In this document: positions 977-64,000 of the stretch, in pieces
Layout of the letters: every line of letters starts with the position of its first letter
Position numbering within the stretch: position 1 is the stretch's first letter
Assembly (NCBI GenBank): GCA_002269645.1
Contig: NIVC01001340.1
Location: 310,001 to 374,000, forward strand
Length of the DNA: 64,000 nt
Reading direction: 5' to 3'
From: Macrostomum lignano
Taxonomy: Eukaryota
The notes under the pieces: model-generated
The model's input: the letters and a program-made list of their open reading frames with translations, nothing else
The model's database searches: none
Told to the model about the DNA's origin: nothing
Translations under genes and position numbers: made by a program

Positions 977-1019
<43 letters not shown>

Positions 1020-11083: not shown

Positions 11084-11248
11084 TGTAAGATGGTTTGCTT
11101 AGTTGATTGCGTGTGCGCACGTTCACTAGCTCTTATGTACATTTGCTCGCTGTACAATGATAATATATAAGTGAATGCCTTGGCGCCCTGGGCAGCCAAA
11201 AGTTGGTCTACACCTTAAGCCAATTTCTCGTTTTCGTTTGTTCTTACA
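11084..11248 (+). repeat. 5' LTR of inner element
   Basis: tgtaag...cttaca; matches 16255-16419. Confidence 0.97.
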
Positions 11249-11268
11249 TTGGTGGCAGCGGCGGCTAT

Positions 11269-42410: not shown

Positions 42411-42538
42411 CTACTAAAGATCCGGTCAGACCAATGGGCTCACAATAACAAAAGTTTTGAATTTCGAACTCAGAGATATTATTTCAATAAACAAACTAAA
42501 CAGCAATAGTTTAAAACATGGATTGTCACTCAACCGCT

Positions 42539-43896
42539 TCACTCAGCCTTGCTTTGCGTGGCCTGCTTAGCCAACTCCTTGGCCTCCTTAACCAACGCCT
42601 TCACCTTCTCATATTTTGGCGCCTTCTGGTGCGCCGGCGCCATGGCCGTGTTGTAGATGGTGCCCAGCAGGATGCCGGCCAGGACGCCGCATAGGGCGCC
42701 GTTGATGCCGCCGACTGCGGCTCCGGCCGCGGTGCTGGCGATGCCGAACCGGTCCTGGCGGACCTGATTGAAGTTGTAGCGCAGGCGGTAGGCCCTGCGG
42801 CGACGGCGGCGAGGAGGTGCGTTTGAGTTCCATTTGTCAAAACTCACTGGCGGTTGCAAGGTCATTAGCTAAAGTCATCAGCTAAGATCACTGACTAAGG
42901 TCACTGGCTAAGGTCATCAGCTAAAGTCACTGGCTAAGGTGGGCTAAGGTCATCAGCTAAAGTCACTGGCTAAGGTCACTGGCTAAGGTCATCAGCTAAG
43001 GTCACTGGCTAAGGTCACTGGCTAAGGTCAACAGCTTAAGTCACTGGCTAAGGTCACTGGCTAAGGTCACTGGCTAAGGTCATCAGCTAAGGTCACTGGC
43101 TAAGGTCATCAGCTTAAGTCACTGGCTAAGGTCACTGGCTAAGGTCACTGGCTAAGGTCACTGGCTAAGGTCACTGGCTAAGGTCATCAGCTTAAGTCAC
43201 TGGCTAAGGTCACTGGCTAAGGTCATCAGCTAAGGTCACTGGCTAAGGTCACTGGCTAAGGTCACTGGCTAAGGTTATCAGCTGTCATTAGCTAAGGTCA
43301 CTGGCCAAGGTCATTAGCTAAGGTCACTGGCCAAGGTCATTAGCTAAGGTCACTGGCTAAGGTCATTAGCTAAGGTCACTGGCCAAGGTCATTAGCTAAG
43401 GTCACTGGCCAAGGTCATTAGCTAAGGTCACTGGATAAGGTCATTAGCTAAGGTCACTGGATAAGGTCATTAGCTAAGGTCACTGGATAAGGTCATTAGC
43501 CAAGGTCACCGCCTAATGTACAGTGCACCATTTTATACCATAGACAGCAGCTAAATAGGACACAACAAGCAGCACAATAATGACTCACCTATCGTACATG
43601 GCCACATCGGGGTCACCCCGGGTCATGCCGATGGTCATGGCGGGGCCCAGCGGCAGGCCGGCCAGGGCGCCCACCCGGCCGAACCGCAGCGCTCTGGCGG
43701 CCAAGCCGGAGAAATTCCGCGGCCCCCTGATCGCCGTGACAACCGGGGCGACCATCGCCATGCTGACGAAGATGCCGAACTGAACGCCACGGTAGGTGGT
43801 GTGGGTGTACAGCTCCAGGCTGGGGTGCGGGATGTTCTCCAGCTCCTCGTCTGACACAGTCAGGCCGATCGTGTTTTTCACGTAAGCCAGCGTCAT
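42539..43896 (-). CDS. Small Gly/Ala-rich putative membrane protein, paralogue B (resembles DUF1757-type proteins; family assignment from memory, unverified)
   Basis: Exons 43896-43589 and 42794-42539 (phase-2 GT-AG intron). MTLAYVKN..DEELENIPHPSLELYTHTT..YDRAYRLRYNFNQVRQDR, clearly homologous to 45790-48028. Confidence 0.85.
42865..43510. repeat. 13-bp minisatellite (ggctaaggtcact) filling intron of paralogue B
   Basis: About 48 copies. Confidence 0.93.
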
Positions 43897-43949
43897 GGCT
43901 GCAGCTGCTGCTGATGGTTGAATGCAAGCAATACTGGATCAGTTTGCAG

Positions 43950-45210
43950 TCCTAACTGTAACAGAAAGCCTGTTAGTCACTGTAACAGAAAGCCTGACAC
44001 TGTAACAGAAAGCCTGTCACTGTAACAGAAAGCCTGACACTGTAACAGAAACCCTGACACTGTAACAGAAAGCCTGTCACTGTAACAGAAAGCCTGTCAC
44101 TGTAACAGAAAGCCTGACACTGTAACAGAAAGCCTGACACTGTAACAGAAAGCCTGACACTGTAACAGAAAGCCTGACACTGTAACAGAAAGCCTGACAC
44201 TGTAACAGAAAGCCTGACACTGTAACAGAAAGCCTGTCACTGTAACAGAAAGCCTGACACTGTAACAGAAAGCCTGACACTGTAACAGAAAGCCTGACAC
44301 TGTAACAGAAACCCTGACACTGTAACAGAAAGCCTGTCACTGTAACAGAAAGCCTGACACTGTAACAGAAAGCCTGACACTGTAACAGAAAGCCTGACAC
44401 TGTAACAGAAAGCCTGACACTGTAACAGAAAGCCTGTCACTGTAACAGAAAGCCTGACACTGTAACAGAAAGCCTGACACTGTAACAGAAAGCCTGACAC
44501 TGTAACAGAAAGCCTGACACTGTAACAGAAAGCCTGACACTGTAACAGAAAGCCTGACACTGTAACAGCAACCCTGTCACTTTAACAGAAAGCCTGGCAC
44601 TGTAACAGAAAGCCTGACACTGTAACAGAAAGCCTGACACTGTAACAGCAACCCTGTCACTTTAACAGAAAGCCTGGCACTGTAACAGAAAGCCTGACAC
44701 TATAACAGAAAGCCTGACACTGTAACAGCAACCCTGTCAGTCACTGTAACAGAAAGCCTGACACTGTAACAGCAACCCTGTCACTGTAACAGAAAGCCTG
44801 ACACTGTAACAGCAACCCTGTCACTGTAACAGAAAGCCTGACACTGTAACAGCAACCCTGTCAGTCACTGTAACAGAAAGCCTGACACTGTAACAGCAAC
44901 CCTGTCACTGTAACAGAAAGCCTGACACTGTAACAGCAACCCTGTCACTGTAACAGAAAGCCTGACACTGTAACAGCAACCCTGTCACTGTAACAGCAAG
45001 CCTGACACTGTAACAGCAACCCTGTCACTGTAACAGAAAGCCTGACACTGCAACAGCAACCCTGTCAGTCACTGTAACAGAAAGCCTGGCACTGTAACAG
45101 CAACCCTTTCACTGTAACAGAAAGCCTGACACTGTAACAGCAACCCTGTCACTGTAACAGAAAGCCTGGCACTGTAACAGCAACCCTGTCACTGTAACAG
45201 AAAGCCTGTT
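43950..45210. repeat. 20-bp minisatellite (cactgtaacagaaagcctga)
   Basis: About 62 copies immediately 5' of paralogue B. Confidence 0.96.
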
Positions 45211-45789
45211 ATTCACTATAATAGAAATCCTTTCCCACTAACAGAAACCCTACTGAGCGGGAATTCCCAATTGAAAACAGTGTATAAAACAAACAAAAAT
45301 GGTATAAAAATATTTCTAATAGAAATTCACTACAACAATAATGAGTAAGTGGCCAGTATATTTTAAATAGAATTATTATACATTTTGCAGACGGAAATAA
45401 TATCATACCTTTTGTATGTATGCATATATATTGTTATAAAATTTAAATATGCACGAATGGTCAGCGCTGGCGAAAGATAAGTAAATAGAAAATTGTGGGA
45501 AAATTCCAAATTTTGAAAGACTACTACTGTAAGTAATAGTAGTGAAAAATATTTGGAAAATTTTTATATTATAACTACGATTTCTAAATTAAGATACTCT
45601 TCATCTCTACTATCAGTAGCGTATAAAATATATAGTTAAAATATGCATAAGGATTATGGATTGAATTTAAGCGATTTCCAAAACAGCGCTAAACAATTTA
45701 AAGAAGAAATTTCGAAAATATTTTCTTTGGCTGGTTAAAATTTGCTAAACGACGAAAATCAGAATTGAGAACCATCGGATTAATTTAGG

Positions 45790-48028
45790 CTACTGCTGAC
45801 GCTTAGCCGCCTGCACTTTAGACTTCAGCTGGTCGGTCAGCGGCGCTTCGCCTCTCTCCCTATTAGCCAGCAGGCTGTTGTAGGCTGTTGCCAAGGCGAT
45901 GCCGCCAAGGATGCCAACAAGGGCACCGGCCGGACCGTTGCTGGCGCCGCCGATGCTGGCGCCAATGAGGAAGTAGCGATCGTGGCGCACCTAGGGGCGA
46001 GCGATGGGTGTCGTTAATATAAGCCTCGTGAAGTCATTCTCGTTGTGTTAGCGCTTAACCTTCTACTAACTCAGTAGGCTAGTTAGAGTGCAATTAGAGT
46101 TAAATTGTGTTAGCGCTTAACTTTCTACTAACTCAGTAGGCTAGTTAGAGTGCAATTAGAGTTAAATTGTGTTAGCGCTTAACTTTCTACTAACTCAGTA
46201 GGCTAGTTAGAGTGCAATTAGAGTTAAATTGTGTGAGTTGTTTGCAATGACTCTTTGACGATTCTTGTCACGATAACGCTTTCAACAGGCTGTGTGAGCG
46301 CGTGTGAGTGTGAGCCTGCGTACAGTATTGGCGAGCTTGCATGTGCTCAGGAGTCAGTGGAATGAGCAGCATTGCATTGACACTGGTTGTGTAAAACGAT
46401 GTAACACCTGATTGGAGTGGTACCGCAGCCGGTACACCCTGTCATAGACGGCGATCTCCGGCTCCTTTCGCATTGCCGCATAAGTCACCAGCGGAGCGGC
46501 GACGGCCCCAACTCGAGCCCCGGTGACGCCGTAGCGAAGAGCCCGATCGGCGAGATCCGACAGGGTCCGGGGGCCGCCGATTGCCGTGACCAGGGGGGCT
46601 GCAACAAGGGAGCCCAGCACTGCGCCGGCCTGGGATGGTGCGGAGTAAGATGTTGGAATTGAGTCTGCATAGAATAACACACATTAACAACTGTACATAA
46701 CACACAACTGTACATAACACACAACTGTGCATAACACACATAACTGTCAGCAACTCAGTCTACCATAACCCACAGTCCAATCGCTCATAACCCAATGTCC
46801 AATCGCTCATAACCCAGTGTCCAATCGCTCCTAACCCACAGTCCAATCGCTCATAACCCAATGTCCAATCGCTCATAACCCACAGTCCAATCGCTCATAA
46901 CCCAGTGTCCAATCGCACATAACCCACAGTCCAATCGCTCATAACCCACAGTCCAATCGCTCATAACCCACAGTGTCCAATCGCTCATAACCCACAGTGT
47001 CCAATCGCTCATAACTCACAGTCCAATCGCTCATAACCCACAGTCCAATCGCTCATAACCCACAGTGTCCAATCGCTCATAACCCACAGCCCAATCGCTC
47101 ATAACCCACAGTCAAATCACTCATAACCCACAGTCCGATCGCTCATAACCCACAGTCCAATCGCTCATAACCCACAGTGTCCAATCGCTCATAACCCACA
47201 GTCCAATCGCTCATAACCCACAATCCAATCGCTCATAACCCACAGTGTCCAATCGCTCATAACCCACAGCCCAATCGCTCATAACCCACAGTCCAATCGC
47301 TCATAACCCACAGTCCAATCACTCATAACCCACAGTCCAATCGCTCATAACCCACAGTCCAATCGCTCATAACCCACAGTCCAATCACTCATAACCCACA
47401 GTCCAATCGCTCATAACCCACAGTCCAATCGCTCATAACCCACAGTCCAATCGCTCATAACTCACAGTCCAATCGCTTATAACCCACAGTTCAATCGCTC
47501 ATAACCCACAGTCCAATCGCTCATAACCCACAGTCCAATCGCTCATAACTCACAGTCCAATCGCTCATAACCCACAGTCCAATCGCTCATAACCCACAGT
47601 CCAATCGCTCATAACTCACAGTCCAATCGCTCATAACCCACAGTCCAATCGCTCATAACCCACAGTCCAATCGCTCATAACCCACAGTCCAATCGCTCAT
47701 AACCCACAGTCCAATCGCTCATAACCCACAGTGTCCAATCGCTCATAACCCACAGTCCAATCACTCATAACCCACAGTCCAATCGCTCATAACCCACAGT
47801 CCAATCGCTCATAACCCACAGTCCAATCACTCATAACCCACAGTCCAATCGCTCATAACCCACAGTCCAATCGCTCATAACCCACAGTTGAACACAGAAT
47901 GCATTATTCACCTGAATAAACCGAACAGTGGTGTGCAGCGTCAGTTCCACATTGGGATGCGGGATGTTCTCTAATTCCTCATCTGTCACAGGAACACCCA
48001 TCAGGTTTTTTAGGTAAGCGCTAGTCAT
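45790..48028 (-). CDS. Small Gly/Ala-rich putative membrane protein, paralogue A
   Basis: Exons 48028-47912, 46629-46408, 45990-45790 (phase-0 GT-AG introns). MTSAYLKN..DEELENIPHPNVELTLHTT..YDRVYRLRYHSNQVRHDR. Confidence 0.85.
46043..46230. repeat. 62-bp unit x3, followed by a dispersed repeat also present at ~30-95
   Basis: Period 62 (46043, 46105, 46167). gtgagttgtttgcaatgactct..attcttgtcacgataacgctttcaac resembles window positions 31-90. Confidence 0.85.
46765..47890. repeat. 22-bp minisatellite (cacagtccaatcgctcataacc) filling intron 1 of paralogue A
   Basis: About 50 copies. Confidence 0.96.
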
Positions 48029-48424
48029 GGTGGCTGTTAAATCAATTTGACAACAGAGCTGAAAATTGAAAAAAATATTTATAAATAGTGAGAATTTTAT
48101 CAAAATAAAATGAAAGTTTCACTAAATATACTTAAGTTGGACAGAGTCCGAAATATGAATAGGTTTTTAATCCATAAGGCAAACACGCGGAACCATGGTG
48201 TGAATATTATATCAGTTATTATTTATTCATTTATTATTCATAATTTATAAATTAAGGTTGCGCAATTACATTCAAATTCGAATATACCAACAGATTTTGT
48301 GCAGCACGCGCTACTAGTAAGTAGAGCGAACAGGAAAAAACGCAGAAAATGCTGAGAAGTACAATAAATAGACAAAAGAAAGTATTGGGTAAGCAAAGTG
48401 AAACACACCGATGTTGCTGAGTTC

Positions 48425-49745
48425 CAGATGCTTCAGTGCCCCCCCCCAGATGCTTCAGTGGCCCCCCCCCAGATGCTTCAGTGCCCCCCCCCAGATGCTT
48501 CAGTGCCCCCCCAGATGCTTCAGTGCCCCCCCCAGATGCTTCAGTGCCCCCCAGATGCTTCAGTGCCCCCCCAGATGCTTCAGTGCCCCCCCCAGATGCT
48601 TCAGTGCCCCCCCCAGATGCTTCAGTGCCCCCCCCAGATGCTTCAGTGCCCCCCAGATGCTTCAGTGCCCCCCCCAGATGCTTCAGTGCCCCCCCCAGAT
48701 GCTTCAGTGCCCCCCCCAGATGCTTCAGTGGCCGCTGCCCCCCTTGTTAGATGCTTCAGTGGCCGCTGCCCCCCTCCCAGATGCTTCAGTGGCCGCTGCC
48801 CCCCTTGTTAGATGCTTCAGTGGCCGCTGCCCCCCTTGTTAGATGCTTCAGTGGCCGCTGCCCCCCTCCCAGATGCTTCAGTGGCCGCTGCCCCCCTCCC
48901 AGATGCTTCAGTGGCCGCTGCCCCGCCTCCCAGATGCTTCAGTGGCCGCTGCCCCCCTTGTTAGATGCTTCAGTGGCCGCTGCCCCCCTTGTTAGATGCT
49001 TCAGTGGCCGCTGCCCCCCTCCCAGATGCTTCAGTGGCCGCTGCCCCCCTCCCAGATGCTTCAGTGGCCGCTGCCCCCCTCCCAGATGCTTCAGTGGCCG
49101 CTGCCCCGCCTCCCAGATGCTTCAGTGGCCGCTGCCCCTCTCAGATGCTTCAGTGGCCGCTGCCCCCCCTCAGATGCTGTAGTGGCCGCTGCCCCCTTGT
49201 CAGATGCTTCAGTGGCCGCTGCCCCCCCTCAGATGCTGTAGTGGCCGCTGCCCCTTGTCAGATGCTTCAGTGGCCGCTGCCCCCCCTCAGATGCTGTAGT
49301 GGCCGCTGCCCCCTTGTCAGATGCTTCAGTGGCCGCTGCCCCCCCTCAGATGCTGTAGTGGCCGCTGCCCCCTTGTCAGATGCTTCAGTGGCCGCTGCCC
49401 CCCCTCAGATGCTGTAGTGGCCGCTGCCCCCTTGTCAGATGCTTCAGTGGCCGCTGCCCCGCCTCCCAGATGTTTCAGTGGCCACTGCCCCGCCTCATAG
49501 ATGCTTCCCCTCAGATGCTTCAGTGGCCGCTGCCCCCCCCCTCAGATGCTGTAGTGGCCGCTGCCCCCCTTGTCAGATGCTTCAGTGGCCGCTGCCTCGC
49601 CTCCCAGATGCTTCAGTGGCCGCTGCCCGCCTCCCAGATCCTTCAGTGGCCGCTGCCCCCCCTCCCCAGATGCTTTAGTGGCCGCTGCCCCCCCCCTCCC
49701 CAGATGCTTCAGTGGCCGCTGCCCCCCCCCCAGATGATTCAGTGG
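48425..49745. repeat. C-rich compound minisatellite (agatgcttcagtg[gccgctg]cccccc)
   Basis: About 50 variable-length copies between CFDP1 and paralogue A. Confidence 0.93.
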
Positions 49746-49800
49746 ACCTCCGATCATCACCATGGAAACAAAGAGTCTCTCAGTTGGTCGCTGCTCAGCC

Positions 49801-50859
49801 TTAAGACTTTGCCCCGCCCTGCTGGCCGCCGCGGCCGCTGGCCAGCCGGGCATCTCTCTCCTGCTCGTAGCGCCTGTAGTCGGCCCGCTCCAAGAAGGCC
49901 TGCCGGTCCAAGTAGCCGGACTTGCCTCGGTTGTACGCGGCCAGATCTTCGCCGATGCCTTCGCTAGATTTGAAGGATTCCCAGTCTAGCCGGGACTTCT
50001 CCAGCGTTGACAATTTCGGCCGCTTAGTCAGCCGGTCAAGGAGGCTGGTCACGCCTTTGGGGGCGGCGGCTGCCGGGCGCTTCGTTGAACAGCCCGACGA
50101 CGGAGAAGCGATTGGAACGGCCACCGACTCGCCCGCGAATTCGAATATTTTGGTAGCTTGAGTAGCTGTAGCGCTTTTCGAGGCGTCAGTGGTCGCCTTA
50201 GTAACCAAATCTGTATTCTTAGCAACGTTGTCGGTCGCCTTAGCAACGGTATCTGTTACCTTAGCAACGGTGTCGGTTGCCTTAGCAACGGTATCGGTTG
50301 TCTTAGCAACGGTGTCGGTTGCCTTAGCAACGGTATCTGTTTCCTTAGCAACGGTATCTGTTTCCTTAGCAACGGTGTCGGTTGCCTTAGCAACGGACGA
50401 GGAAGCGGGCTTGGCAGGCCGAACGTCGGCCAAGAAGCTGGCCCAAAGAGCATCGGCTCGGCGTTTCTCCTGTTCATCTGCTACATCAGCCGCCGGCTCA
50501 TCAAGTCCAGCCGTTGTTAGTGATGAAGAGGGAGTCGGCTTAGCGGGCGCTTCATCTTCAGCCTCTCCCTCCAGTCGGATTCCACCCCGTCTAAATCTGT
50601 TAACCCGACCGGGAAGCTCCACCTTCTTAGCTTGAGTTTTTGACTTCTTTGTTGTTTGTTGCTTTTTACTGCTTGAATTATCACCGGCTCCATTTAATCC
50701 AGCTTCCTCGTTTGGATTCTCTTCATCATCATCTTCATCATCAACATCATCATCGTCATCAAGCTCCTTCTCGTCGGGCACGTACTCGGAATCGTCGCTC
50801 GAATCGTCGTCCTGATCTGAGTCCAACTGGCGCTTGTCAGCAAAGAATAACGCAGCCAT
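49801..50859 (-). CDS. CFDP1: Craniofacial development protein 1 / BCNT (Swc5) homologue, single exon
   Basis: Acidic N-terminus DSSDDSEYVPD, KIFEFAGESV and BCNT-C domain KLSTLEKSRLDWESFK..GKSGYLDRQAFLERADYRRYEQER. Confidence 0.93.
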   Translation of the reverse strand: MAALFFADKRQLDSDQDDDSSDDSEYVPDEKELDDDDDVDDEDDDEENPNEEAGLNGAGDNSSSKKQQTTKKSKTQAKKVELPGRVNRFRRGGIRLEGEAEDEAPAKPTPSSSLTTAGLDEPAADVADEQEKRRADALWASFLADVRPAKPASSSVAKATDTVAKETDTVAKETDTVAKATDTVAKTTDTVAKATDTVAKVTDTVAKATDNVAKNTDLVTKATTDASKSATATQATKIFEFAGESVAVPIASPSSGCSTKRPAAAAPKGVTSLLDRLTKRPKLSTLEKSRLDWESFKSSEGIGEDLAAYNRGKSGYLDRQAFLERADYRRYEQERDARLASGRGGQQGGAKS

Positions 50860-51879
50860 TATTGGTATTCACTGACGGGTTTCTCTGGATTCGCTGAAGT
50901 TGGCACATGCACAGATGACGGTTAGTATAACTGTGAGCAGTCAGTGGATTCGTCATCAAATCAAGAAAACAGCTGACCCGCAGTCAGCGAGAAGGCAAGC
51001 ACATAGCTACATGCCCATTCTGCTGACCCCTGAGCAATCATACACACGCTCACACAGGGTGTACAGCGGCCCAGACTTTCTAATCGTGAGGAATGTAGGC
51101 AACACAATTAGTAAAAAACTACTAATCAGATAACGAGGTAATTACGTATTTAATTAAAAGCAATAGTTACTCCCGCCGTTTACCTCTACTAGCCTAGACC
51201 ACAACAGTCATTTTAGTTAATTAATATTAAAGATAGGAAGGACTAAAGGACTAAATATAAGCTTTAACCAGACGCTTTGTAGGCAACTGCTGGCTAAAGG
51301 CAGTTGATAGATAGCTGGACCTCTAACTGACTGGACAGACAGAGAAAGAGAGAAAATCTTGTCAGTTTGTGTGCTCGAAAAGTGAGGAGAGTCAGAGAGG
51401 GGAGGGTGAGAGAGAGAGAGAGCACGATCATGCGCGAACTCAAACAGCATAGCATTTGGAAGCTTTTGGATTTAATCTGACTATTGCTAAGTGTTTACAC
51501 AATACCCTGTAGGGGTTAGCAGTGAATGGAGAAGCGGACAGGACTCTAGAGCTCATATGCGCGAGTGAATTATCTGCCTACCAAACTTATTTCGTAGGTT
51601 TCACGTAAAGTGCACGAGACTGTACAAAAATATAGTACAATAAAATAAAAAAACGTTCAAATAATCTCACATAAGAGACCATACAGTCTCATGGAAACAC
51701 TGTCTAATACAGTAGTATTAAATTAAATAGAATACCTAGCTAATTATAATAAATAGTGATAAGTTGAACTGGGCCACAACTTGATACAAAAACCTACAAT
51801 CAATACAATGCCATAAGCCCATAATGCTACTGCTACCTGACTACTAATTAAGTAGAGTGAATTAAGGTTTTTCGATGGG

Positions 51880-52260
51880 ACACTGCTATCTGACCTGACC
51901 TACAGGTCCTTCATTTGGGTCAACTGCTACCTAAACTACAGGTCCTTCATTTGGGTGTTGGGTCAACTGCTACCTGAACTACAGGTCCTTTATTTGGATC
52001 AAATTGCTACCTGAACTACAGGTCCTTCATTTGGGTGTTGGGTCAACTGCTACCTGAACTACAGGTCCTTCATTTGGATCAAATTGCTACCTGAACTACA
52101 GGTCCTTCATTTGGGTCAACTGCTACCTGACCTACAACTCCTTTATTTGGGTCAACTGCTACTTGACCTACAGGTCCTTCATTTCGGTCAACTGTTACCT
52201 ACCTGACCTACAGGTACTTCATTTGGGTAAACTGCTACTTGACTTATAGGTCTTTCATTT
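51880..52260. repeat. ~36-bp minisatellite (gggtcaactgctacctgaactacaggtccttcattt)
   Basis: About 10 imperfect copies. Confidence 0.88.
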
Positions 52261-53721
52261 TTTCAACTGCCATTTGACTTATAATTATAAATTCTTCATT
52301 TTTGGTCAATTTCTAATAGAAAGATAGGATTCCTAAAATCTTAAGAAAGATTCTGGTCTTTTATTTAGATCAACTATTACTTAGCTTTCGGGTCAGGTTT
52401 ATAATGATTGCTTATTCAAATAATAACTTATTTAAGACATTTTCTCCAAAAAACATTATATTTAATTATTTAATCCCAATAACAAATGGAATAAGATACA
52501 AGGCTATGTAACATAGCAATAAAGTAAATATTGATAAAAAATAATTATATTTGATATACATAATTATATGATTATTTTAATGATTATGAGGTTCTATTCT
52601 AAATAGATCTAGCTTTGAATTTTGAAATATGCTAAAAATTGAAATATTTTCAGATTTATATTTGATTTATATCTAAAAATATTATATAAAATTTAGAACT
52701 TGATATTAAACTGACTGAGTGACTCTAAGTAAGCTTTTCTATTATACATTTCTTCTATGTTTGTTTATATAAATATATTATAACAGTTATAGTTTTTGTT
52801 ATTATGGATATTCCTAGACCTAGGCCTAATAATATTAGTAATATATATATTTTATAATTTATAGTTATTTATATTAAAATTATGAAAATTTAGTTGTTGT
52901 AGTTCTACTATGGCTATATAGTAGAGGTTGGACAGTATTGAAATCTTTGGATAGGGCCTAAAATTGGGATTGGGAATAATTTATTCTCGGGATAGGGATT
53001 TGGGAATTGGGATCAAGTCTTTCAATGTATTGTCCATATAAACAAAATTGAGCAAAAAATTTCAAGATCAAAAAGTGAAACACAAAATTGATGCAAAGTT
53101 TTGTAACCAAAAAGTAATAACATAATGAGTACAAGTTAAAACAAAATACATTCAAGCAAGTAATCACAAGGCCTAATTAGATAAATTTTTAATCAGAAGA
53201 CCTGTTCCCAATTCTCATGTTTTTAGGGCCAGGATTCTGGTCCTGTGAGAATCCAATTTTCCTTGGGATCCCAAGATTTTGGGATTGGGATTAGGATCCT
53301 ATCTAATTTCTATTATGTAGAATAATTTATTTTATATTATAAATGAAGTTAAGTTTTAGTGTGTTTTACTAAGAAGGCCCCTAACTTATTTATTACTAGG
53401 CCTAAGCAAGATTTAATATTAGTAAGGGCCTAAGTTGGTAGGCCTAGGCTTAATGCTTATTACTATTATTATTAGACTATCCTAATTAATTAATTTAATA
53501 TAATAATAGTTTTGAATAATTAAAAATTTAACTAAGCTTTACTTAGTTATTATATAAAATAAATTATTCTTAATTTGCATTTTTGCCTAATAAATTTATA
53601 ATATTTAGTAGGCCTAGTACTGTCTATAGTAAAAAAGCCTAGGTAGTAGCCTGTCTTAGAAGAAACAATTCTTGTTAAAATGTTTTAATACAACTATTTC
53701 AATAACAATAACAACTATTCA

Positions 53722-54019
53722 CATACATGCGCAACAGTCGGCCGAGTCGGCCGATCCGGCCGACCGATTTGGCGGCCAATCAAGGAAGTCGCAAAAATGC
53801 CCACCCAAAAAATAACCTGAAGAGTAGTACTAAGTAGCTGACGAGGCATTTTAGGTTAATAAAACAGTCATAGTTACTCCTGCCGTTTACCCAAAGTTGC
53901 GTTAATTTTGCTTTCGGGTTTTTTTATATGTAAGTCGCATTTTTGGCCAAAAACTACGTCGCATTTTTGTTAAAACTAAGTCGCACGGCTGACCGAATTT
54001 TGGAGGTTGCACATGTATG
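53722..54019. mobile_element. hAT-type MITE (298 bp)
   Basis: TIR catacatgcgcaac / gttgcacatgtatg; perfect 8-bp TSD actattca (53714-53721, 54020-54027). Confidence 0.85.
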
Positions 54020-54382
54020 ACTATTCAATTTATAATTTATATAATTATACATCTTTTCTCTGAACCATCAGATTCAACATACATTTATAGATAGATAGAA
54101 TTAGGAATTTTAGTTTATTTCAGTTTTACACTTTTACTGATTAATTTTCTTCTTTTTATCTACTATCTATACTTTTAAAAAAAATTAATGGCATTATGAA
54201 AACATAATAAACAATAAATCAAATAAATTTTGGTTTTTAACATTACAAAAACATAAATCATAAAAGCATAGGGGGGGGGGCTATCTATAACTGTAGGAGG
54301 GCTTGGAGGTGTTGGAAGGAACAGACAGTGCTCTGACATGAGGAAAATCACTTTTAAATTATTCTCTGCTTGCGTTTGAATC

Positions 54383-54561
54383 CAGGGGTGGATTCAGAGG
54401 GGGGCAAGGGGGGCGGCCCCCCCTCAGCCGCGGCCAAAAAAATGTTGATCATACTTTTTGGCCCGCTACTATGCCAGGTCTATTTTCCAATATGGGGTTG
54501 CAGTGCTTGGTATAACTTGGCCGTTGGCCCCCTCCTCAAAAAATTTCTGGATCCGCGCCTG
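54383..54561. mobile_element. hAT-type MITE (179 bp)
   Basis: TIR caggggtggattcag / ctggatccgcgcctg (12/15 match); perfect 8-bp TSD tttgaatc (54375-54382, 54562-54569). Confidence 0.88.
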
Positions 54562-55624
54562 TTTGAATCAGTGCCAGAATTTCCGGGAGTCAAAGTCAAT
54601 TAGAACAAACTGCCGGTGCTATGGAAGCTCGGGCTGCTGACTTCATCAAGCTCAGTGTGAGGGTAGCTGTGGTCGTGGCGGAGTGGTTGAGTTTCATGTC
54701 CTTTTAAATGCCGGCCAGACAGGATTACTCAAAAGCTGAAGAGAAAACAAATGATTTATTCAATACTTAGTAGAATTTTCGGATGTGTTCCTTTTAGTAG
54801 GTCACTGCTTCCACCACGATAATTCGCGGGAAAATATCCTAAGACTTGCATGGTACGTTAGCTCGTACACTCGAACTAGTCTATATAAGAACTCTTCCTA
54901 ATTTAGATCGTTGAGATTGAAGTGCTTTCCGAGCTGCAGGGTCACGAATTGTATCTAGGACATTGATTTCAGTCGGCCCAACGAAAGCGCGCACATGTAT
55001 TTTACGGCTGAATTTATTGAAGTTATATCAACGTCACGGCAAGTTAAGATTATAATTGTAACATAATGGGCTGCAGTTGGAATTAAGGTGAAGCTAGCTG
55101 AAGTCGACCATGCAACAAGGATCAGATATAAATCAGGCTTATGTACATATTTATGCAGCTGTAACTGCATGTAACATGTTGGGGACCTCGGGAATCGGGA
55201 TATTAAGGAAAGGGGTGGTTCCACGATCGAGTCTGGCCAATAAGGCGGGCGAGCGCAGACTTTTTATAGACTTTCATGAGCCACCAGCAGGTGGGAAAAG
55301 GGTTTACACCTTGGTCATGGGATCTTTTTAGCGAGTGAAACGCGTGGGACCACCCAGAAGGGCCAATGAAAACAAAGGAGAAAACAAAATTGAAGGAGTG
55401 GATGCGCGCGCCTTGAGTGGAGAAAAGAATTTTCACTTGGAGAATTTTCACACGGAAGAAAAATTATTTGAATGGTAGGAGCGTAGTAGGTTACATATTT
55501 TACTACGCGTAAAATTTATCGTTACACACCGCGATCGTGTGGCAGAAGTTACACCCAGTGGGGGGGCCACAGCCTTGCACAGTATAAAGGGGCCTCGATC
55601 GTTTTATTCATTCAATTTTAATTC

Positions 55625-55790
55625 AGTCACTATAAATTTAAATGTGAAAGTATTTCCAAATACTAAAAATGGTCTGTCGGTAGGTATGTGGGTATATGGG
55701 TATGTGATCGATTTTAGCCAAAATGGCTGGACCGATTTTCTGTCCTATACTCGCACAATAATATTCGTATACTCGTAGATTAGAAAGAAA
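55625..55790 (+). mobile_element. Possible Helitron-like non-autonomous fragment
   Basis: tcactataaatttaaatgtgaaag...gtatgtg repeats...aaatggctggaccgattttc resembles Helitron/HINE 5' regions recalled from other animals; no 3' hairpin found. Confidence 0.3.
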
Positions 55791-56949
55791 ACTTAAGTAG
55801 AAACTTGTAAAACAAGACTGCTGGCTGCATTCTTTCGTAGTTACGAATGTGCATGCTCCTGAGTTGGAAGTATCATTATGCTGAGTCGAGCAGTAAAATG
55901 TCCTAGAATGCCAATGCAAATATGCCAATTCGCAGACAGGCAAACATGGACGACATGTATATATGTTCTAAAGTGTTTTGATACTCGTACTGTCTAAAAT
56001 TATTGAAAGAAATTATCCTATTTCTTGTAATGTCACATTACTGTATACCACCGGTACTCGTACAATTTACATGTATGCATACACATTGCATGCACAGTAT
56101 ACATACTGTATGGTACCGTGCATATGCAATTCTACCTTCAACCACAAAAGCACTTGCTCATATAATTTACCATTCATTGGTGAAACGGTCTCGTACAGTA
56201 CCAAGGACTACTAGACGAAGTGTTCCTAGTGGTCCTTGTACAGTACATGTAGGCTAATTGCATTATTGTGTATCCATGCACACTCTGTATACCTATATAA
56301 GCAGGTCAAGAAATCATAACCTGGTAGAGAGGCGAGAGAGAGAGAGAGAGAGAAGACAGAGAGAGAGAGAGAGAGAGAGATGGAGAGAGAGAGTTGAGAG
56401 TGTGTAGAGAGGCGAGAGTGGGCGAGAGGTGAGAGTCGACAATTCATACAATTTTTTAACGGTGGAGAGAGGCGACTGAACATGGGTAATACGTGGTAAT
56501 TAAAACACTGGGTCTAACCCCTGATAAGGACGAGTGGATGGGGTATATGATGGGTCATGGGTAAGGTTATCGTTATGGCTTTCTTACCATATATATAAAA
56601 GGAGAGTTAGATTCGGTTGATTCTCGTCATTGACAGAACCAGTACGCGACAGTTAAGTTTGGTTATCTAAAATTAATTTGTCTGTTTGTCGTACTCTGTC
56701 CTATCCGGTGGTAAGCAGTTTTTCTGTTCCAGTACCTGCTATTCGACTAAATCTGTATTAATGAAGTATTAAAAAAAATTCGAAAACCATCGACGACCTG
56801 GCGTCCTAGTAACTACGTAACGGTGCGAGCATGCTAGCACTAAACGAGCGAACTCAAGCGCAGCGTGTGCGAGAGACGACGAAGAGTTAAAACGGAGGAA
56901 AACGTTCTAGCAGGAGCGGGAGGCCCCTGCGGCGGGGCGGGAGAGGGCG

Positions 56950-57660
56950 CGCCACAGACGGCCTGTGGACACGACGGAACCGGACCGCCTCTTGACCGCT
57001 AGGATGAAGTCGGTCGACGCGAGAACCCTTCGGAAGACACAATCGCGTCCGGCGGGGGATCTAGAGGTCGACTGCCACTGGACGAGACGGCGATGTAGCG
57101 CGTGCGTGCGGACCATTCGTCCGAGGCCAGGAAGAGGTCGGAGGCTAGGATGCAGGTGCGGCAGAGCAAAGACGTGGTTCGGTGGCCGCGGGGGGAGGGT
57201 CGCTTCTGAAGCACGTCGACCGGGAGGCGCCTCGGTTTGCAGCTGAAGGATAGCGAGCGCCCGGACGGACAGCCGAAGTAGACCGACGACCTTCGACCGG
57301 GAAGGTTTCCGGTTGGTCAAGCCCAGCTACGGCGTACAGCAGGAAGACGGTGGACAAGCTTCTCAGTGGCGAGACGTGATCCACCAGAGTGGACGTGGAC
57401 AGTGGTCGGTCCCAACTCAGGGACCGACCACTGCGGCGAGAAACCGATGCGGCGCCTCCGCTCGAGAGTCGTTCCGTCAAGTAGTCGACGGAAACACGCA
57501 CAGACCGACGCACGCTGTAAGGTCGACGCCCAAAAAGGCCGGTTTCGTAGGCCGCACCCCCCCGTCGAAGACGGTAGTTTAGCCGAACAGTCTTAGACTG
57601 TAAGCCGGGGAACCTCCGACCTCTATCCTGCGACAAGAGACGATGAAAGATGGTCGAGAT
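56950..57660. pseudogene. Degenerate tyrosine recombinase (DIRS/Crypton-like), readable only in the unreversed complement
   Basis: Decoded fragments: RSYFSQLRSWEAFC, LLCRYIAHARL..SLRSYVHAVSFLH, FSGQSIRRGGAASA, GLSESDIRPLGGWR*DAVLCY; frameshifts and stop. Confidence 0.8.
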
Positions 57661-58258
57661 GGGACAGCGCGGCGGTCGCCGCGAGGTGAAGAAAATACCG
57701 AAGCGTCGACGTTCGACGTAGGTAGGTTAAGACGAAAGGTACGAAAATCAGGAAGAGGAAGGGAAGTAATCTCAACTCTAGGCGAAAGAGCCGGCGGCGG
57801 TCAAAAAGGCGTTGGTGAAACGAAACGAACCGAGGAAGGCCGCACAAATCGTATTTCAAAGCGGATTTGTGTAAATCTGTCCGTAAATGTGTTTAGCCTT
57901 CGCACGAAGCCTTCATAGCCTTCAGCTAGAGAAAACAATTATAAGTATCGATCGAAGATTTTTGCCGAGTAGTCTTTTTTATGAGCAAAACTGGTTTACT
58001 TTCACCGTGTTTCGTCTGTAAGGATGACGTCATTTGGTCGCAGTAATTTTGCTACATGTCGTCGAGTAATTCCTTGTCGGGAGGAAGATTTTTAAGACAT
58101 TGACGCGGTTTTGGAGTGAATAAAGTTAACCTGCCACCGTCGCGGCGGTTACCGTCTGTAACGTCTGTTAACACTGCGCTTACTCGATTTTATCTATTTA
58201 TGCTCATCGTCGTCTTACGCCGCGAGAGGCGTAAGGTGTCGTGGCTATGGCTCGGCTT

Positions 58259-59347
58259 TACCTTCGAGAAACCTCTTAGAATTGTCGCTAACGTCGTCAA
58301 GACTACGTCTTGAAGCCGGAACTACTTTGACTTGGCCTCTAGGACTCTCTGTAAGCCAAGCCTTTGTGTTCTTTTTAAAACGCTATGGATGTCTTAGGAA
58401 GATTGCAATTATCCGACAAGTCGTAGTTACTCTACCGTAAGAGTGGCGAAGTGAAACGTACACTTTACCCGTTTCAGTTTTAACAGTTTAACAAGTAAGT
58501 TTGGGCTCGACTGCAGCTCGTCATTGCTCGTCAGTTGCTTTGTGACCGCTCAGTGGAGATATATGACGTAGTGTAATACCGGTTGTGGTTTCAACACTCG
58601 TATGAGTAGTTTCGTGTTCGACTGTAGTTAGAAGTTCTTCAGCTACCGACGAGTGGAGATATGTAACGTAGTGTTTTACCAGTGGTGGTTCAACACTCGA
58701 ATGAGTAGTTTCGTGTTCGACTGCAGTTAGAAGTTCTTTTACAAGTACCGAGAAGTGAAGAGATGTAACGTAGTGTTTTACCAGTGGTAATTCAACACTC
58801 GAGTGAGTAGCTTCTTCTTCAACTGCAGTTAGAAGTTGCTTTGTGACCGCTCAGTGGAGAGATGTAACGTAGTGTAAAACCAGTGGTGGTTCAACATGCG
58901 CGTGAGTAGTTTCGTGTTCGACTGCAGTTAGAAGTTGCTTTGTGACCGCTCAGTGGAGAGATGTAACGTAGTGTTTTACCAGTGGTGGTTCAACACTCGA
59001 GTGAGTAGTTCCGTGTTCGACTGCAGTTAGAAGTTGCTTTGTGACCGCTCAGTGGAGAGATGTAACGTAGTGTAATACCGGTTGTGGTTCAACACTCGTA
59101 TGAGTAGTTTCGTGTTCGACTGCAGTTAGAAGTTCTTCAGCTACCGACGAGTGGAGAGATGTACCGTAGTGTATTACCGGTAATGGTTCAACACTCGAGT
59201 GAGTAATTTCGTGTTCGGATGCAGTTAGAAGTTCATTTGTGACCGCTCAGTGGAGAGATGTAACGTAATGTCTTACCAGTGGTGGTTCAACACTCGTGTG
59301 AGTAGTTTCGTGTCCGACTGCAGTTACAATGACCTCACGACGGGATT
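58259..59347. pseudogene. Ankyrin-repeat ORF (9 x 33 aa, 99-bp units) with stops and frameshift, readable only in the unreversed complement
   Basis: MEALWRILTAIAAVLMQNFG..SPLHFACEMG, then units such as DVNLQRNTGESPLYIASQNGHHQVVSSLIKAQA. Lesions near 58520-58590 and a TAA near 58790. Confidence 0.92.
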
Positions 59348-59419
59348 CGATGTATTTATTCAGTTAATTGGGAAGATCTTCACGTACAAAGATGGTTTGT
59401 TGACTGTAAATTCTACGTC

Positions 59420-61540
59420 AGGCTAGCTTAGTCTCGACTCGCTCGTCGACGTGAGTCGTGACCTCGTCAGTCCGAAGTGGCTTAGGGCTCGGCGTAACGT
59501 CTCGCGTCGACGACTACGGGACGTCGTCTAATATTCTTCACCTGGTTTGTTACTACTGAATTAAAAACAGCAGCCGTCGATGAGTCTTCCGACCCCGTTG
59601 TCGGACTGCTGTGACCTGCCGTCTTGACTGCGGTTAAGGCTGTAACTACACTACGTCAACTAAGGGCCGGCTCTTATGGTGGTCTCTCCGGACACGCTCA
59701 CGCTACCTCGAGGCCTCGTCGTTCTCAACCACTTGCCCGTGTAAGTCACGAATCCTAAGCCACTCAAGAGAAAACCCCTCACTCTACCAGACACAAGACA
59801 ATCAAGACAACACTAAAGATCTCTAAGACCGTCACATCTGCAAACGAAAGACACACGTTTCGTAACCACGTCTTTAATAGCGATTTACGTACCAGGGTAC
59901 GACATGCGAGTAATAAGTTGCGAAGCTTCAGTAATAAATTCCGATGATATTATGTAAGTACTCTGTTATACAGTTATACATCCAACTGTTACTAATTAAA
60001 AATACTCACCGCTTCGTGTGATGGTATTAACGGTTGGATGGTAACATTGTGCTATATTAGTACATAATTTAAGGTATCAGATACCGGTACAGAGTAGAGT
60101 GCATCTGTTACCTGTACCGGTATGTTTTTTGCCATATAATTTACATAAACATTGGCTTAGCAAAAATGTCGGAGGTTAGGACGAAAACGTTGTGGGCCTA
60201 AGTGTGACTCCGGTCGTGACCTGTTACAGAGGCGTACGGCAGAGACGGCGATGGGCGGGTAGCGCGGCGACGACGGTTTGGCGCAGAGGTTGTAGGGGGT
60301 AGGGCAGAACCTCCGGGAGGCCTTCCACGAGTGGAGGCGGAGTAACGGGACGGTGCACCACGTGCGTCGGAGAGGACTAGCTGTCCCACTTCTCGAGGCG
60401 CACTCGTGGTCGAAGGACCTCTTGGCCTACGACGCTTCAGAGAGATGGGACGTTCCAGTTGACAAGCAGTGTGAGTTCATGGACCAGTTCTTCCAGTAGA
60501 CAGTGTTCTTACCGAAGTTAGTCGTTCCGAACTTCAGGATGGTGCACTTCTGGTAGTGGAAGGCTTACCACCTGCTCTGCGGCCAGCTCGTCACCTTCTT
60601 CCTCTTGGAGCACTCAGAGTGCTCTGTCAGCGACGTCTACGACGAGCTGACACACCTCTTCTCGGCTCTCGTCCTGTCTGTTTGTGGACTGTGTGGACTG
60701 GCTAGAGCCCCAGCGTAGTACTTAGTAAAGAAAGAGTCGCTACACCGGTAGATGGAGTTCCCACGCCTGTTCCTCTCTCGCCTGGTCGTAAACCTGCCGT
60801 AGTACTCGTGTGACTCTTGTCATTAACTAGCCGACGGGGTCGACGACGTCGTCAAGTAGCCGTCAGAGTCTGGACACTCGCTGAGTCCGTGTAAGATGAA
60901 GGTGGGCAAGGTTTAGGCCGGCTTATACTCAGGCGACGGGGAGTGATTCAGGTCACGAGAGCTCATGATAGTCTAGATGCTGCACCACTCTCTCACAGAC
61001 CACGCAGAGAGAACGTCACTGACGTCGGGCGCTAGAGTCCTCAGCGAGTGTCTCGACTAACGGTCTGACGGTCTGACGCGGGAGAGTCGTGCCCTCCGAG
61101 AGTCTCGCGACCGAACGGACTTCAAGCCGCTGGCTCCTTGACGTCTCTCTCAGCACTCGAGCACGAGTTCAGTGAGCCACTCGTCTCCGTATCGAACCAG
61201 AGCACTCTTCAGCCGCTGACTTCGCTGACTCCTCAAGCACTACGCCGTAGACTCCTCGGCGCTGAGCCGCACCTTCAAAACGAAAGCCAACCTGGTCGCT
61301 GGCTTTGAGCTTAAGAACCGTCCTCGAGATTCCCGCACGAAAGGGGAGGCCAACAGTCCGTCATTGATAAAGATGTACTTGAAGCTGCGAGACGACACCC
61401 GAGACGCCGAGCTCGACGCCTGACTAGCTCTTCGAGCGCGAGTCCTGACCTAGGCCCTACACCGACTCTCTCTCCTGAGCCTACTCGTCCTCGACGTCCA
61501 ACGGCAAAAAATAAGAAGCTTAGGCCTCGTCAAAGACATT
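59420..61540. CDS. cGAS-like receptor / Mab-21 family nucleotidyltransferase, two exons, readable only in the unreversed complement
   Basis: Decoded exons ~59420-59760 and 60171-61540 (ttcg|gtgag ... ttttacag|cc, phase 1; second exon is 2 nt + 456 codons, open). NTase motif FVVGSYSEGWGNSL..DGRTDANSDIDVM; Mab-21 C-terminal LKSYHVKTITF..W and MNHFF. No in-frame ATG found at the start of the first exon. Confidence 0.88.
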
Positions 61541-63499
61541 TATAAATTCTTCGACCTCTACTTCTCTCGTTTAGAAGAGCTGACCGACTACTCCTCTGAA
61601 GCTTTTATAGTTCGTTTATTGGTGTCCTTAAAACACATTTTTTGCTTTCGAGAGAATGAACACTCGTCCATTAAATAAAAAAAAATTAAAATAGAATTTA
61701 ACAAATTGAACTAAAAATTCACGGCTCTTAATTGTGCTGACGGGTCTCACGTGATGTCCATTTGTTTTAGTAAATGGCTTTAAACGAGAGTTTAGATAAC
61801 TTCTTACTGATCGTCACGTCCTATAGTCGATAAGTTATGCTAAAAGTTATATGTCTGTTTCAGCTTTAGAGGCTCTTGAAATCGAGTATTCGCATAAGAT
61901 GAAAGTCAAAAAATAATTCTTAAATTTATTATTAATATTGTTATCGTCAGTAACATCAACTTAATCAACAGTTCGTTACGGAAAACGGGCCTAAATAACT
62001 TTATCACGTAAGAAACTTAAGCAGAGATAAATCATTACACTATCTTACCAATTTAATGACAAACGAAACGGTTTCTTTTTTTATTTTACACGACTTGAGC
62101 GGCATCCCTCGCACAAATCTCTCCGGCCGAGTTGGAGTTCGTCATCGATTAATAGCGATAAGAGTCCGGACGTGAAGTAAGACGGTCGGAAAGACGTCAG
62201 ATGTCCGCTCGCAACTCGTCGGAGACGCCAACGGCCCCTGTTACTTGTTACGACACGAGCCAGAACGACAAACTAACTTACGAAACTTACGACAAACTCA
62301 TCACTCGACCTAATCTCAAAGTTAGATCGGTCTGAGCGCCAAAATAACAGAGACTCCGTGTCGCGCGCCAACCCACTAAGTTCTCTGGTCACAACCCAAA
62401 CAACCGCTTGAGTTTCGTCAAAAGAGAATCGTGAGCGTCGCGCTATTAGGACGTCGACGAGAAGAAATCTACGTCACAGATGTCCTGTTTAAATTCTTCG
62501 ACCCCAAAGATATTTTGCGCAATGGGTAGTTTTAATCTCTACTACTTTACGTAGACGTCTGAGAATTCAATTATTTATAAGCGTGCTCCCGACGTGCGTG
62601 GGACCGCGTTGCGGAAGACGCTGTAGCACGGAGTCGGTCGCGACTGCCGCTAAGACGGGTAAGGCAACTGAGGACTCGTGTACGTTTGTAGAGTTATGAC
62701 ACTCGTCCGTGAGTGAGTATGTGTCCGAGTGTGTCCCACGGGACTTGAAAGATTAGCTGTCCGTACATGTGGGATACGTAAACCCCAACCCAGGTCATAC
62801 CACGTGAACATCCACGAGTCCTAGACCCGCACCGGTAGTTGTCGGTTAAAGTTATTAGCTTTAAAATTAGAACTCAGCTAGCTAAGAGAGTAATTCGGAC
62901 CAGGAGAGAGCGCGGAAGATGGAAGAAAAAATGAGAGAGGGGGTCAGAGTAGGTCTTCTCTTACTTTTATTCAAACCGAACACATTTTATAATAACGTCT
63001 CTCCGATGCGTTCTCTCGAATCACAGCGGCTTCGCCGTCGTTTTACGCTTTAGACTCCCGAGATATATAAAATATAGATAAGATAGATCCTGATATCTTA
63101 GGAAGTTAAGAGTTGTCGTCATATTGTTCCAAAGTAAAGGATAATAGAAGACGAATGTACTGTCTTTCTGAAAATTTGTGTTACCGGAGATTTTCGGGAT
63201 AACACTCACACTCCGTGTTACGTTTCGTTACCTACGAAACTTGGGGGAGGGGTTTCGTAAACGACGCTCAGAGAAGACACGGTGCGCAAGCGTCCGACGA
63301 CCGAGCCGGGAGTTTGAAGTCGAAGCAATAACAGGAAAAACCCGTAACTCCGGCCGACCAGACCTCGACCCGACGAACCTACCGACGCCAGCCCTGCTCA
63401 TCTCCACCGACGAAAAAGGCGAGGCCACACTCGACGCGAAGAGGTTAAGAAATTCGAACGTATAGACGAGGCTAAGGACAGTTAGTTGACGAGTGATCT

Positions 63500-63850
63500 G
63501 ACGAATGGTGAGAGACTTGACGAAGGCGAGAGACTTGACGAAGGTGAGAGACTTGACGAAGGTGAGAGATTTGACGAAGGTGAGAGACTTGACGAAGGTG
63601 AGAGACTTGACGAAGGTGAGAGACTTGACGAAGGCGAGAGACTTGACGAAGGCGAGAGACTTGACGAAGGTGAGAGACTTGACGAAGGTGAGAGATTTGA
63701 CGAAGGTGAGAGATTTGACGAAGGTGAGAGACTTGACGAAGGTGAGAGACTTGACGAAGGCGAGAGACTTGACGAAGGTGAGAGACTTGACGAAGGCGAG
63801 AGACTTGACGAAGGCGAGAGACTTGACGAAGGCGAGAGACTTGACGACAG
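63500..63850. repeat. 18-bp minisatellite (gagagacttgacgaaggt; decoded ctctctgaactgcttcca)
   Basis: About 19 copies within the mirror segment. Confidence 0.93.
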
Positions 63851-64000
63851 GTTTGTCCACTGTGACTAGGACTCGTGTGAATGTTCGCGCGGATACGACA
63901 ATAATGGTTTCAACTCGGATTTGTCTTTTAATAAACCGTATACTTTATTTTCGATGTATGAGAGATGTGTGATGAGAACATCTCTCCTCAAGTCATCCGT

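Follow-up and report, generated by a model that had tools for sequence, protein, structure and literature searches.

The last ~7.7 kb of the window (the whole 64,000-nt stretch of DNA analyzed here) was corrupted by computer; it is no feature of the organism's biology and holds no biological novelty. The letters are transformed from a point within 56,316–56,492 through to the window end, and the DNA underneath is recognizable as Macrostomum sequence. The block at about 56,321–64,000 is almost certainly an in silico artefact in which each base was exchanged for its complement with the order unchanged, and beneath it lies genuine contiguous Macrostomum DNA. The mirrored block (56,321–64,000; this and the features inside it are given without strand) was delimited using dinucleotide ratios, 4-mer scores and BLAST/tblastn comparisons of the sequence as given and complemented. 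The letters would have been swapped base by base in place; the outcome would be identical if a piece due for reverse-complementing had merely been reversed. The block as given would represent the true opposite strand written backwards, and complementing it in place would recover the true sequence. From left to right, the true order would be ~1.9 kb of intergenic DNA, then a gene whose ankyrin array is followed by the nucleotidyltransferase-core exon, the canonical intron and the Mab-21/cGAS-like exon of 456 codons, and lastly repeats. A software step is the probable cause of the corruption, since physical DNA cannot carry a parallel complement.

The first-pass annotation had stated that neither real strand of this region carries sensible genes, and this agrees with what was found. 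The longest stop-free frames on the two real strands of 56,320–64,000 comprise 238 and 193 codons. The as-given ORFs of 210 and 155 aa fall inside an 18-bp tandem repeat of ~20 copies (63,499–63,852, TRF), the source of long meaningless as-given ORFs, and those of 137 and 163 aa matched no Pfam family. A Pfam match of the 210-aa ORF to Med31 was rejected, since it stems from the low complexity of the 18-bp repeat and no single stretch passes by itself. Comparison of five Macrostomum proteins with the block as given, in six frames, using tblastn produced no match, and when the as-given block was compared on both strands with public M. lignano DNA, BLASTN returned microsatellite matches only. 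After complementing, the five proteins matched in forward frames with E = 0. Thus, the complemented form gives strong matches and the given form none, and the view that only the unreversed complement makes sense, which had been put forward with a proposal to BLAST the reversed segment, is upheld. Each call of an ORF, gene, repeat or motif made at 56.3–64.0 kb as given is therefore void, as the first-pass annotation had warned for any standard annotation of the block.

Statistics that are unchanged by reverse complementation yet altered by reversal reveal mirroring for that very reason. The (CA+TG)/(AC+GT) ratio falls from 1.34 upstream to the reciprocal 0.67 in the tail, CG/GC is 0.58 upstream and 1.70 in the tail, and TA/AT is 0.86 and 1.43, respectively. 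The sliding ratios that had been suggested as a means of locating the switch separated the two parts cleanly: (CA+TG)/(AC+GT) was at least 1.02 in all 2-kb windows ending by 56,000 and at most 0.75 in all those starting at or after 56,001. Word usage is flipped in the way described earlier, with GACGAC (0.30 per kb upstream vs. 1.17 in the tail) and GTCGTC (0.05 vs. 0.78) enriched, and CTGCTG (0.71 vs. 0.13) and CAGCAG (0.62 vs. 0.26) depleted. The 4-mer orientation score was +144/kb upstream versus −170/kb in the tail, where it was negative in seven of the seven 1-kb bins, in keeping with the claim that the segment runs to the window end. In the control, real M. lignano DNA, 2 of 43 bins were negative, never two in succession. 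As the E-values of homology for the complemented sequence are also effectively zero, chance is excluded as the origin of the tail pattern. The corruption can thus be detected from sequence alone by CG/GC, (CA+TG)/(AC+GT) and k-mer orientation scores, and the switch localized to ~100 bases.

Upstream, 1-kb bins with a negative score are located at 28–29, 31–32 and 47–48 kb, and each of them is a single satellite. Mirroring was considered for all three and rejected: the satellite at 47 kb can be aligned to M. lignano in its given form, and the ORF in which the 31-kb satellite lies continues as given into non-repetitive, protein-like sequence.

As for the junction, change points and orthology place the passage from normal to complemented letters in a zone at 56,316–56,492, and the switch lies most likely at 56,316–56,326. 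The 4-mer change point, obtained with a model trained only on public, independent M. lignano DNA, is 56,321. Other k-mer sizes and training sets gave change points in the range 56,182–56,451 (among them 56,316, 56,430 and 56,451), with 56,182 an outlier obtained at k = 3. Orthology confines the switch to positions beyond 54,864 and no later than 56,492. These positions fit the boundary proposed earlier near a (GA)n tract at ~56.3 kb, the tract itself being uninformative. This GA-rich, microsatellite-like tract (56,326–56,430, read from the sequence; (CT)n-rich in the true sequence) begins ~6 nt after the switch, and because it looks alike forwards and backwards, it hides the exact junction base. 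The three copies of AGAGAGGCGA (56,326, 56,406 and 56,466) share a single letter form, and local counts of junction motifs in real DNA are small, too few to choose the natural form. At the corresponding spot M. lignano has unrelated sequence, 514 bp vs. 1,628 bp in the window, and among the sequences compared there was no further copy of 54.8–56.6 kb.

The DNA preceding the block served as a control. According to BLASTN, positions 40,166–54,864 (strand −) are colinear as given with NIVC01000092.1 (21125->2440); these 15 kb of upstream sequence are untouched. This control includes a CFDP1/BCNT gene (49,801–50,859, strand −), which, read as given, is 88% identical to that of M. lignano. Complemented 56,492–58,479, which comprises intergenic/promoter DNA and a gene start, is the ortholog of NIVC01000092.1 1926->1 and directly continues the as-given upstream match on that contig in the same direction. 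The match (86% over 2,028 bp) was obtained by BLASTN with the complemented query only, and identity rises to ~97% over its last 380 bp, at the gene start. In addition, the complemented window matched NIVC01001460.1 with 91.5% identity over 1,535 bp in the region of the 456-codon exon. Synteny with the orthologous contig can be followed as far as 58,479, and colinearity at 59.3–62.9 kb rests on the paralogous contig NIVC01001460.1.

That the true sequence is the in-place complement follows from the complemented tail, which carries the upstream synteny on without a change of direction. DNA identity to M. lignano is 86–97% in the complemented tail and 85–90% upstream, which we regard as equal divergence; together with colinearity, this indicates that the tail is genuine neighbouring DNA with its letters swapped. 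At the protein level, the tail product and the upstream CFDP1 are both 88% identical to M. lignano, which argues that the two parts come from the same genome. Reversal in place as the operation was rejected: on the other strand, the true tail would then be the in-place complement with its order inverted, which would require an inversion in M. lignano with a breakpoint exactly at the junction. The colinearity of the complemented tail with the orthologous M. lignano locus agrees with the cause proposed earlier, namely an error made in processing or scaffolding, or else a segment transformed on purpose. A cause of this kind is also favoured because a biological inversion gives a reverse complement, which BLAST would detect.

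The gene underneath the block was identified, in complement reading, as a member of the Macrostomum ankyrin + Mab-21 (cGAS-like) family. The unreversed complement contains a 493-codon open frame and an ankyrin array. The start codon ATG (MEALWRILTAIAAV..., 58,259–58,261) corresponds to the initial Met of the gene that is annotated in M. lignano at NIVC01000092.1 1-248. The ankyrin-repeat array (58,442–59,326), recognized by Pfam, TRF and tblastn, has a 99-bp (33-codon) period, with TRF reporting period 99 and 8 copies. Ank_2 (E = 6.6e-60), Ank (E = 1.2e-39), Ank_4 and Ank_3 all score far above the Pfam cut-offs, and the ankyrin repeats are N-terminal. The array is followed by the nucleotidyltransferase-core exon (59,394–59,762, …FVVGSYSEGWGNS…SDIDVM…), which in tblastn is 80% identical to P0003 and 84% to P0002, both Macrostomum proteins. 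GSYSEGWG...SDIDVM can be read in this exon and is conserved in the paralogues; it is a candidate G-S ... D-x-D motif.

The first-pass annotation had also reported a canonical intron, a 456-codon open exon and protein-family motifs in the complement, and all three were recovered. The 407-nt intron (59,763–60,169) has its splice signals, GTGAGT...TTTTTACAG, in the complement only: the exon ends ...GGATTCG/GTGAGT at 59,762/59,763, and at 60,169/60,170 the acceptor reads TTTTTACAG/CC. As given, the intron reads CACTCA...AAAAATGTC, a splice signal on neither real strand. The spliced reading ...HIQCLGF/ASNPAF... agrees with the paralogue proteins across the junction. Counted from the acceptor (60,170) up to the TAA (61,538–61,540), the exon measures exactly 456 codons plus the stop. 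On the basis of length, Pfam and protein searches, this exon (60,170–61,540) encodes the HhH/H2TH-like C-terminal domain of Mab-21 as well as a long tail specific to the family. Its product shows 88% identity to M. lignano P0001 at 100% coverage (E = 4.7e-209). PF20266 Mab-21_C scored 25.7 bits against a cut-off of 24.1 (25.2 bits for the spliced product), and cGAS structures were matched weakly, in their C-terminal lobe (E ~0.03). The Pfam model of the N-terminal Mab-21 NTase had no match in the complement-read gene, and a homology search with its N-terminal exon, aimed at the 1,594-aa M. lignano orthologue, also gave none.

The reading frame of this gene is not intact. An in-frame stop and a frame change occur in the ankyrin array, the splice phase is ambiguous at 59.33–59.40 kb, and the TAA at 61,538 comes early, ~30 codons short of the paralogue ends. 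This copy may be a pseudogene or a carrier of indel errors. Its closest known counterparts are the M. lignano ankyrin + Mab-21 proteins (e.g., BOX15_Mlig022050g1, A0A1I8I2X0 and A0A1I8HGT1), distant relatives of cGAS and cGAS-like receptors. The complement-read gene has in common with them the ankyrin array, the candidate GS...DID nucleotidyltransferase-core motif and, at 84–88% identity, Mab-21_C and the long C-terminal tail, whereas the in-frame stop, the frame change and the TAA ~30 codons early set this copy apart. The biological importance of the region is nil: once corrected, it reads as ordinary Macrostomum DNA carrying a single member of an ankyrin + Mab-21 family that has expanded in the lineage.

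Readings other than a computational artefact have very little to recommend them. That the block is physically real DNA, i.e., a flatworm chromosome bearing a 7.7-kb parallel complement of the ancestral sequence, is a vanishingly improbable reading for which only the sequence string itself speaks; it would imply a new kind of process rewriting DNA base by base into its complement with the polarity unchanged. DNA strands are antiparallel, and their synthesis is template-directed. To our knowledge, all known types of inversion, transposition, repair and template switch yield a reverse complement and never a parallel complement, and the reading therefore conflicts with the antiparallel helix and with every rearrangement known. 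Moreover, the complemented block keeps 86–97% identity, exact exons, splice signals and synteny with M. lignano, which only an exchange of symbols in a sequence that already existed can give. An ordinary chromosomal inversion, or a gene on the opposite strand that was misread, can likewise be given next to no credence, although inversions are common and strands are easily confused when a sequence is read without tools. Such an inversion would also form a sharply bounded block with genes not in the expected direction, but it would keep strand-symmetric dinucleotide statistics and be detectable by BLAST, and neither is true of the block. CG/GC and (CA+TG)/(AC+GT), which reverse complementation leaves invariant, both flip; BLASTN and tblastn searches of the block as given, run on both strands, found no match; and the ORFs on both real strands are only repeat-derived or featureless. 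The first-pass annotation was consequently right in denying a real inversion, the reverse complement of which would have been found in these two-strand searches.

Least credible of all, and practically without probability, is the explanation that the tail is a compositional oddity, namely divergent, repeat-rich sequence with fortuitous open frames in its complement. The window is indeed very rich in satellites, and satellites give long stop-free frames in several frames simultaneously. The frames of the complement, however, match specific families as well as specific proteins and DNA of Macrostomum (E-values between 1e-60 and 0), and the satellites upstream either score as normally oriented or can, in their given form, be aligned to M. 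lignano.

Given the artefact, the question is whether it arose in the window or in the source record. We hold, though weakly, that the transformation was more likely applied to the window. The block begins at ~56,320, i.e., at 88.0% of the window length (0.88 × 64,000), and ends exactly at the window end (64,000) without an N gap, and for these reasons a window-level origin is favoured; the block could then be a decoy, a control made on purpose or the result of a slip in a pipeline. The other source to be considered is an error in the record, in which an assembler, scaffolder or submission script would have reversed a minus-oriented contig or component and left it uncomplemented; the block would then be an entire component reaching past the window. 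This is a possible origin, albeit a somewhat doubtful one. In its favour, a minus-oriented piece that was only reversed becomes the in-place complement that is seen, and the junction borders on a microsatellite-like tract, as assembly breakpoints typically do. Against it, the window has no N gap at all, and both the start and the stop of the block look window-defined. Colinearity cannot separate the two origins because a contig that was only reversed gives the same in-place complement. Look-ups of exact products, for the upstream CFDP1 ORF and for one tail ORF, both as given, returned no entry. Should the source record contain the block, that record needs correction, and the tool that wrote it may have corrupted further components.

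Two known kinds of sequence handling resemble what is seen in the window. Orientation-handling bugs, in which a minus component is written reversed-only or complemented-only, occur in assembly, scaffolding and submission; in the literature searched, no report of such an error in a deposited record was found. They likewise produce a sharply bounded in-place-complement block that, once complemented, is colinear with orthologues. The edges of such blocks are normally those of components and are often marked by N gaps, whereas here there is no gap and the far boundary lies outside the window. The other kind is the decoy. The Dfam paper documents decoys made from genomic sequence that is reversed but left uncomplemented, and its authors mention a k-mer discrepancy of the reversed sequence (PMC3531169). 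The block belongs to the same class of strings, since complement without reversal is the opposite strand of reversal without complement. As in the Dfam decoys, base composition, simple repeats and low complexity are kept, and homology, genes and splice signals are destroyed; the k-mer discrepancy shows itself here as reciprocal dinucleotide ratios. In contrast to those decoys, only the last 12% of an otherwise natural window was transformed, in place and unmarked.

Stop-free frames in the tail of the window (56,320–64,000) were compared between its two real strands and its unreversed complement, made in place and read left to right. As given, the longest such frames on the two real strands comprised 238 and 193 codons. 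Two of the as-given ORFs of at least 100 aa (137 and 163 aa) matched no Pfam family, and the remaining ones fall inside an 18-bp tandem repeat. In the complement, a clean ankyrin array begins at 58,793 and an open frame of 493 codons at 60,059. According to the Pfam analysis, the array matches Ank_2 (E = 6.6e-60), and the long frame scores 25.7 bits with Mab-21_C, above the curated cut-off of 24.1. The complement also contains a canonical intron with a donor at 59,763 (...GGATTCG followed by GTGAGT) and an acceptor at 60,169 (TTTTTACAG). As given, the same intron ends read CACTCA...AAAAATGTC, a splice signal on neither of the two real strands.

Analysis using tblastn with five Macrostomum proteins showed no matches in any of the six reading frames of the tail as given, and E = 0 matches in forward frames of the complemented tail; these matches defined the exons. 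The Mab-21 frame of the complement aligns along its entire length (100%) with Macrostomum lignano proteins at 88% identity (E = 4.7e-209), and a dozen more Macrostomum paralogues match it. In addition, the complemented window is 91.5% identical to M. lignano contig NIVC01001460.1 over 1,535 bp, with additional colinear pieces on this contig reaching 62.9 kb.

Word usage is flipped as well, GACGAC rising from 0.30 per kb upstream to 1.17 in the tail and CTGCTG falling from 0.71 to 0.13. The dinucleotide classes CA+TG, AC+GT, CG, GC, TA, and AT are invariant under reverse complementation and are swapped by reversal alone or complementation alone. The ratio (CA+TG)/(AC+GT) was at least 1.02 in all 2-kb windows ending by 56,000 and at most 0.75 in all those starting at or after 56,001. 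Upstream and tail values were near-reciprocal for all three ratios: 1.34 vs. 0.67 for (CA+TG)/(AC+GT), 0.58 vs. 1.70 for CG/GC, and 0.86 vs. 1.43 for TA/AT. Four-letter words were also scored for orientation, as the log ratio of each word's frequency to that of its letter-reversed form (strand-symmetric counts). With public M. lignano DNA as the sole training set, this 4-mer orientation score per kb was +144 upstream and −170 in the tail. It was negative in all seven 1-kb tail bins; in the control, real M. lignano DNA, it was negative in two of 43 bins, never consecutively.

The upstream part is normal as given. It carries a vinculin-family exon (open frame at 681–1,481, minus strand; PF01044, 2.7e-31), with a (CAGA)n-type coding repeat after it, and a gypsy-type LTR retroelement (9,614–16,066, plus strand) with a gag-like ORF, aspartyl protease, reverse transcriptase (RVT_1), RNase H, and integrase zinc-binding and core domains; a (CCCAGCCGGCGC)n repeat lies at its 3′ end. 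The single-exon CFDP1/BCNT gene (49,801–50,859, minus strand; Pfam BCNT, 1.6e-28) shares 88% identity with M. lignano BOX15_Mlig029546g1; within its coding sequence, a 21/42-bp repeat (KATDTVA...) spans 50,191–50,396. The same identity of this gene and of the Mab-21 frame to M. lignano shows that the upstream part and the tail share one genome. Long tandem arrays with 13–46-bp periods are unusually abundant in the window (23,202–27,636, 27,961–29,562, 34,408–37,313, 43,955–45,208, 46,764–47,888, and others), for example a 32-bp unit repeated 139 times (97% identity) and a 21-bp unit repeated 89 times. Some have extreme GC skew and lack CpG, and the arrays yield stop-free frames in several frames simultaneously.

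Synteny was assessed against the region of M. lignano that holds the CFDP1 orthologue (L002; NIVC01000092.1, 490,741–511,865). As given, window 40,166–54,864 aligns to L002 21,125–2,440; this 15-kb synteny has 85–90% identity, satellites included, and two DUF1757 genes and one Peptidase_C54 (ATG4-like) gene are annotated in M. lignano within it. The complemented window 56,492–58,479 aligns to L002 1,926–1, with direction unchanged and immediately adjacent to the upstream match, reaching ~97% identity over the last 380 bp, at the start of an annotated M. lignano gene. In-place complementing thus restores a contiguous, colinear locus with divergence equal to that of the flank, and the direction and adjacency indicate that it undoes the operation. 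On these alignments, the window is very close to, yet distinct from, the public M. lignano assembly, and could represent a sister species, a homeologue, or another assembly.

The cumulative maximum of the orientation score lies at 56,321; other k values and training sets gave change points at 56,182, 56,316, 56,430, and 56,451. The exact junction base is hidden because a GA-rich tract (56,326–56,430) reads alike forwards and backwards. Three copies of AGAGAGGCGA (56,326, 56,406, and 56,466), all in one letter form, argue for a switch before ~56,322 or after 56,475, and combined with the orientation scores they put it at 56,316–56,326. Window 54,864–56,492 comprises 1,628 bp without counterpart in the 514 bp of M. 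lignano there (L002 2,440–1,926), a lineage-specific indel in which the junction of the mirrored block lies.

A chromosomal inversion gives a reverse complement, which BLAST would have matched; the tail as given had no match, and an ordinary inversion is therefore ruled out. Since DNA strands are antiparallel, no polymerase, repair, or recombination process is known to make a parallel complement. A symbol-wise operation on existing sequence, turning the letters into their complements with order kept, is the sole explanation preserving 86–97% identity together with exon structure, splice signals, and synteny. Building decoy sequences by reversal without complementation is a documented practice (Dfam, PMC3531169). 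Colinearity does not tell which software step was faulty, because the same outcome is expected if a piece due for reverse-complementing was merely reversed. The first-pass annotation had described a mirror-image tail beginning near the GA-rich tract and most likely due to a processing or scaffolding error or a deliberate transformation; frames, domains, words, ratios, homology, and synteny bear it out as a whole, including its exon of 456 codons. The mirrored block is no biological feature, and, as that annotation also held, standard annotation of 56.3–64.0 kb as given should be discarded.

As to where the letters were changed, we lean slightly toward a transformation of this window alone. The block comprises 7,680 bases (12% of the window), starts at 56,320, exactly 88% of 64,000, and ends with the window, and an N gap is absent; the round figures suggest a boundary set relative to the window, not the genome. 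Corruption in the source record is somewhat less probable; in its favour, the junction borders a microsatellite-like tract.

In the complement reading, the underlying gene has an ATG at 58,259, an ankyrin array with a 99-bp period (58,442–59,326), an exon with GSYSEGWG...SDIDVM (59,394–59,762), the intron (59,763–60,169), and an exon of exactly 456 codons plus TAA (60,170–61,540). It is a member of an ankyrin + Mab-21 family that has expanded in Macrostomum. The ankyrin array is interrupted by a stop in frame and by a change of frame (58,400–59,400), and the TAA at 61,538 is early, as paralogues run on for ~30 codons; this copy may have become a pseudogene, or it may contain indel errors (of the assembly). 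A protein labelled as coming from a "Kangiellaceae bacterium" metagenome-assembled genome (P0011, 1,065-bp contig) covers 97% of the flatworm Mab-21 frame at 41% identity; the probable source is contamination of that bin with eukaryotic DNA. Among known systems, the C-terminal lobe of cGAS shows a weak link to the ankyrin + Mab-21 gene, at the sequence level only (E ~ 0.03).
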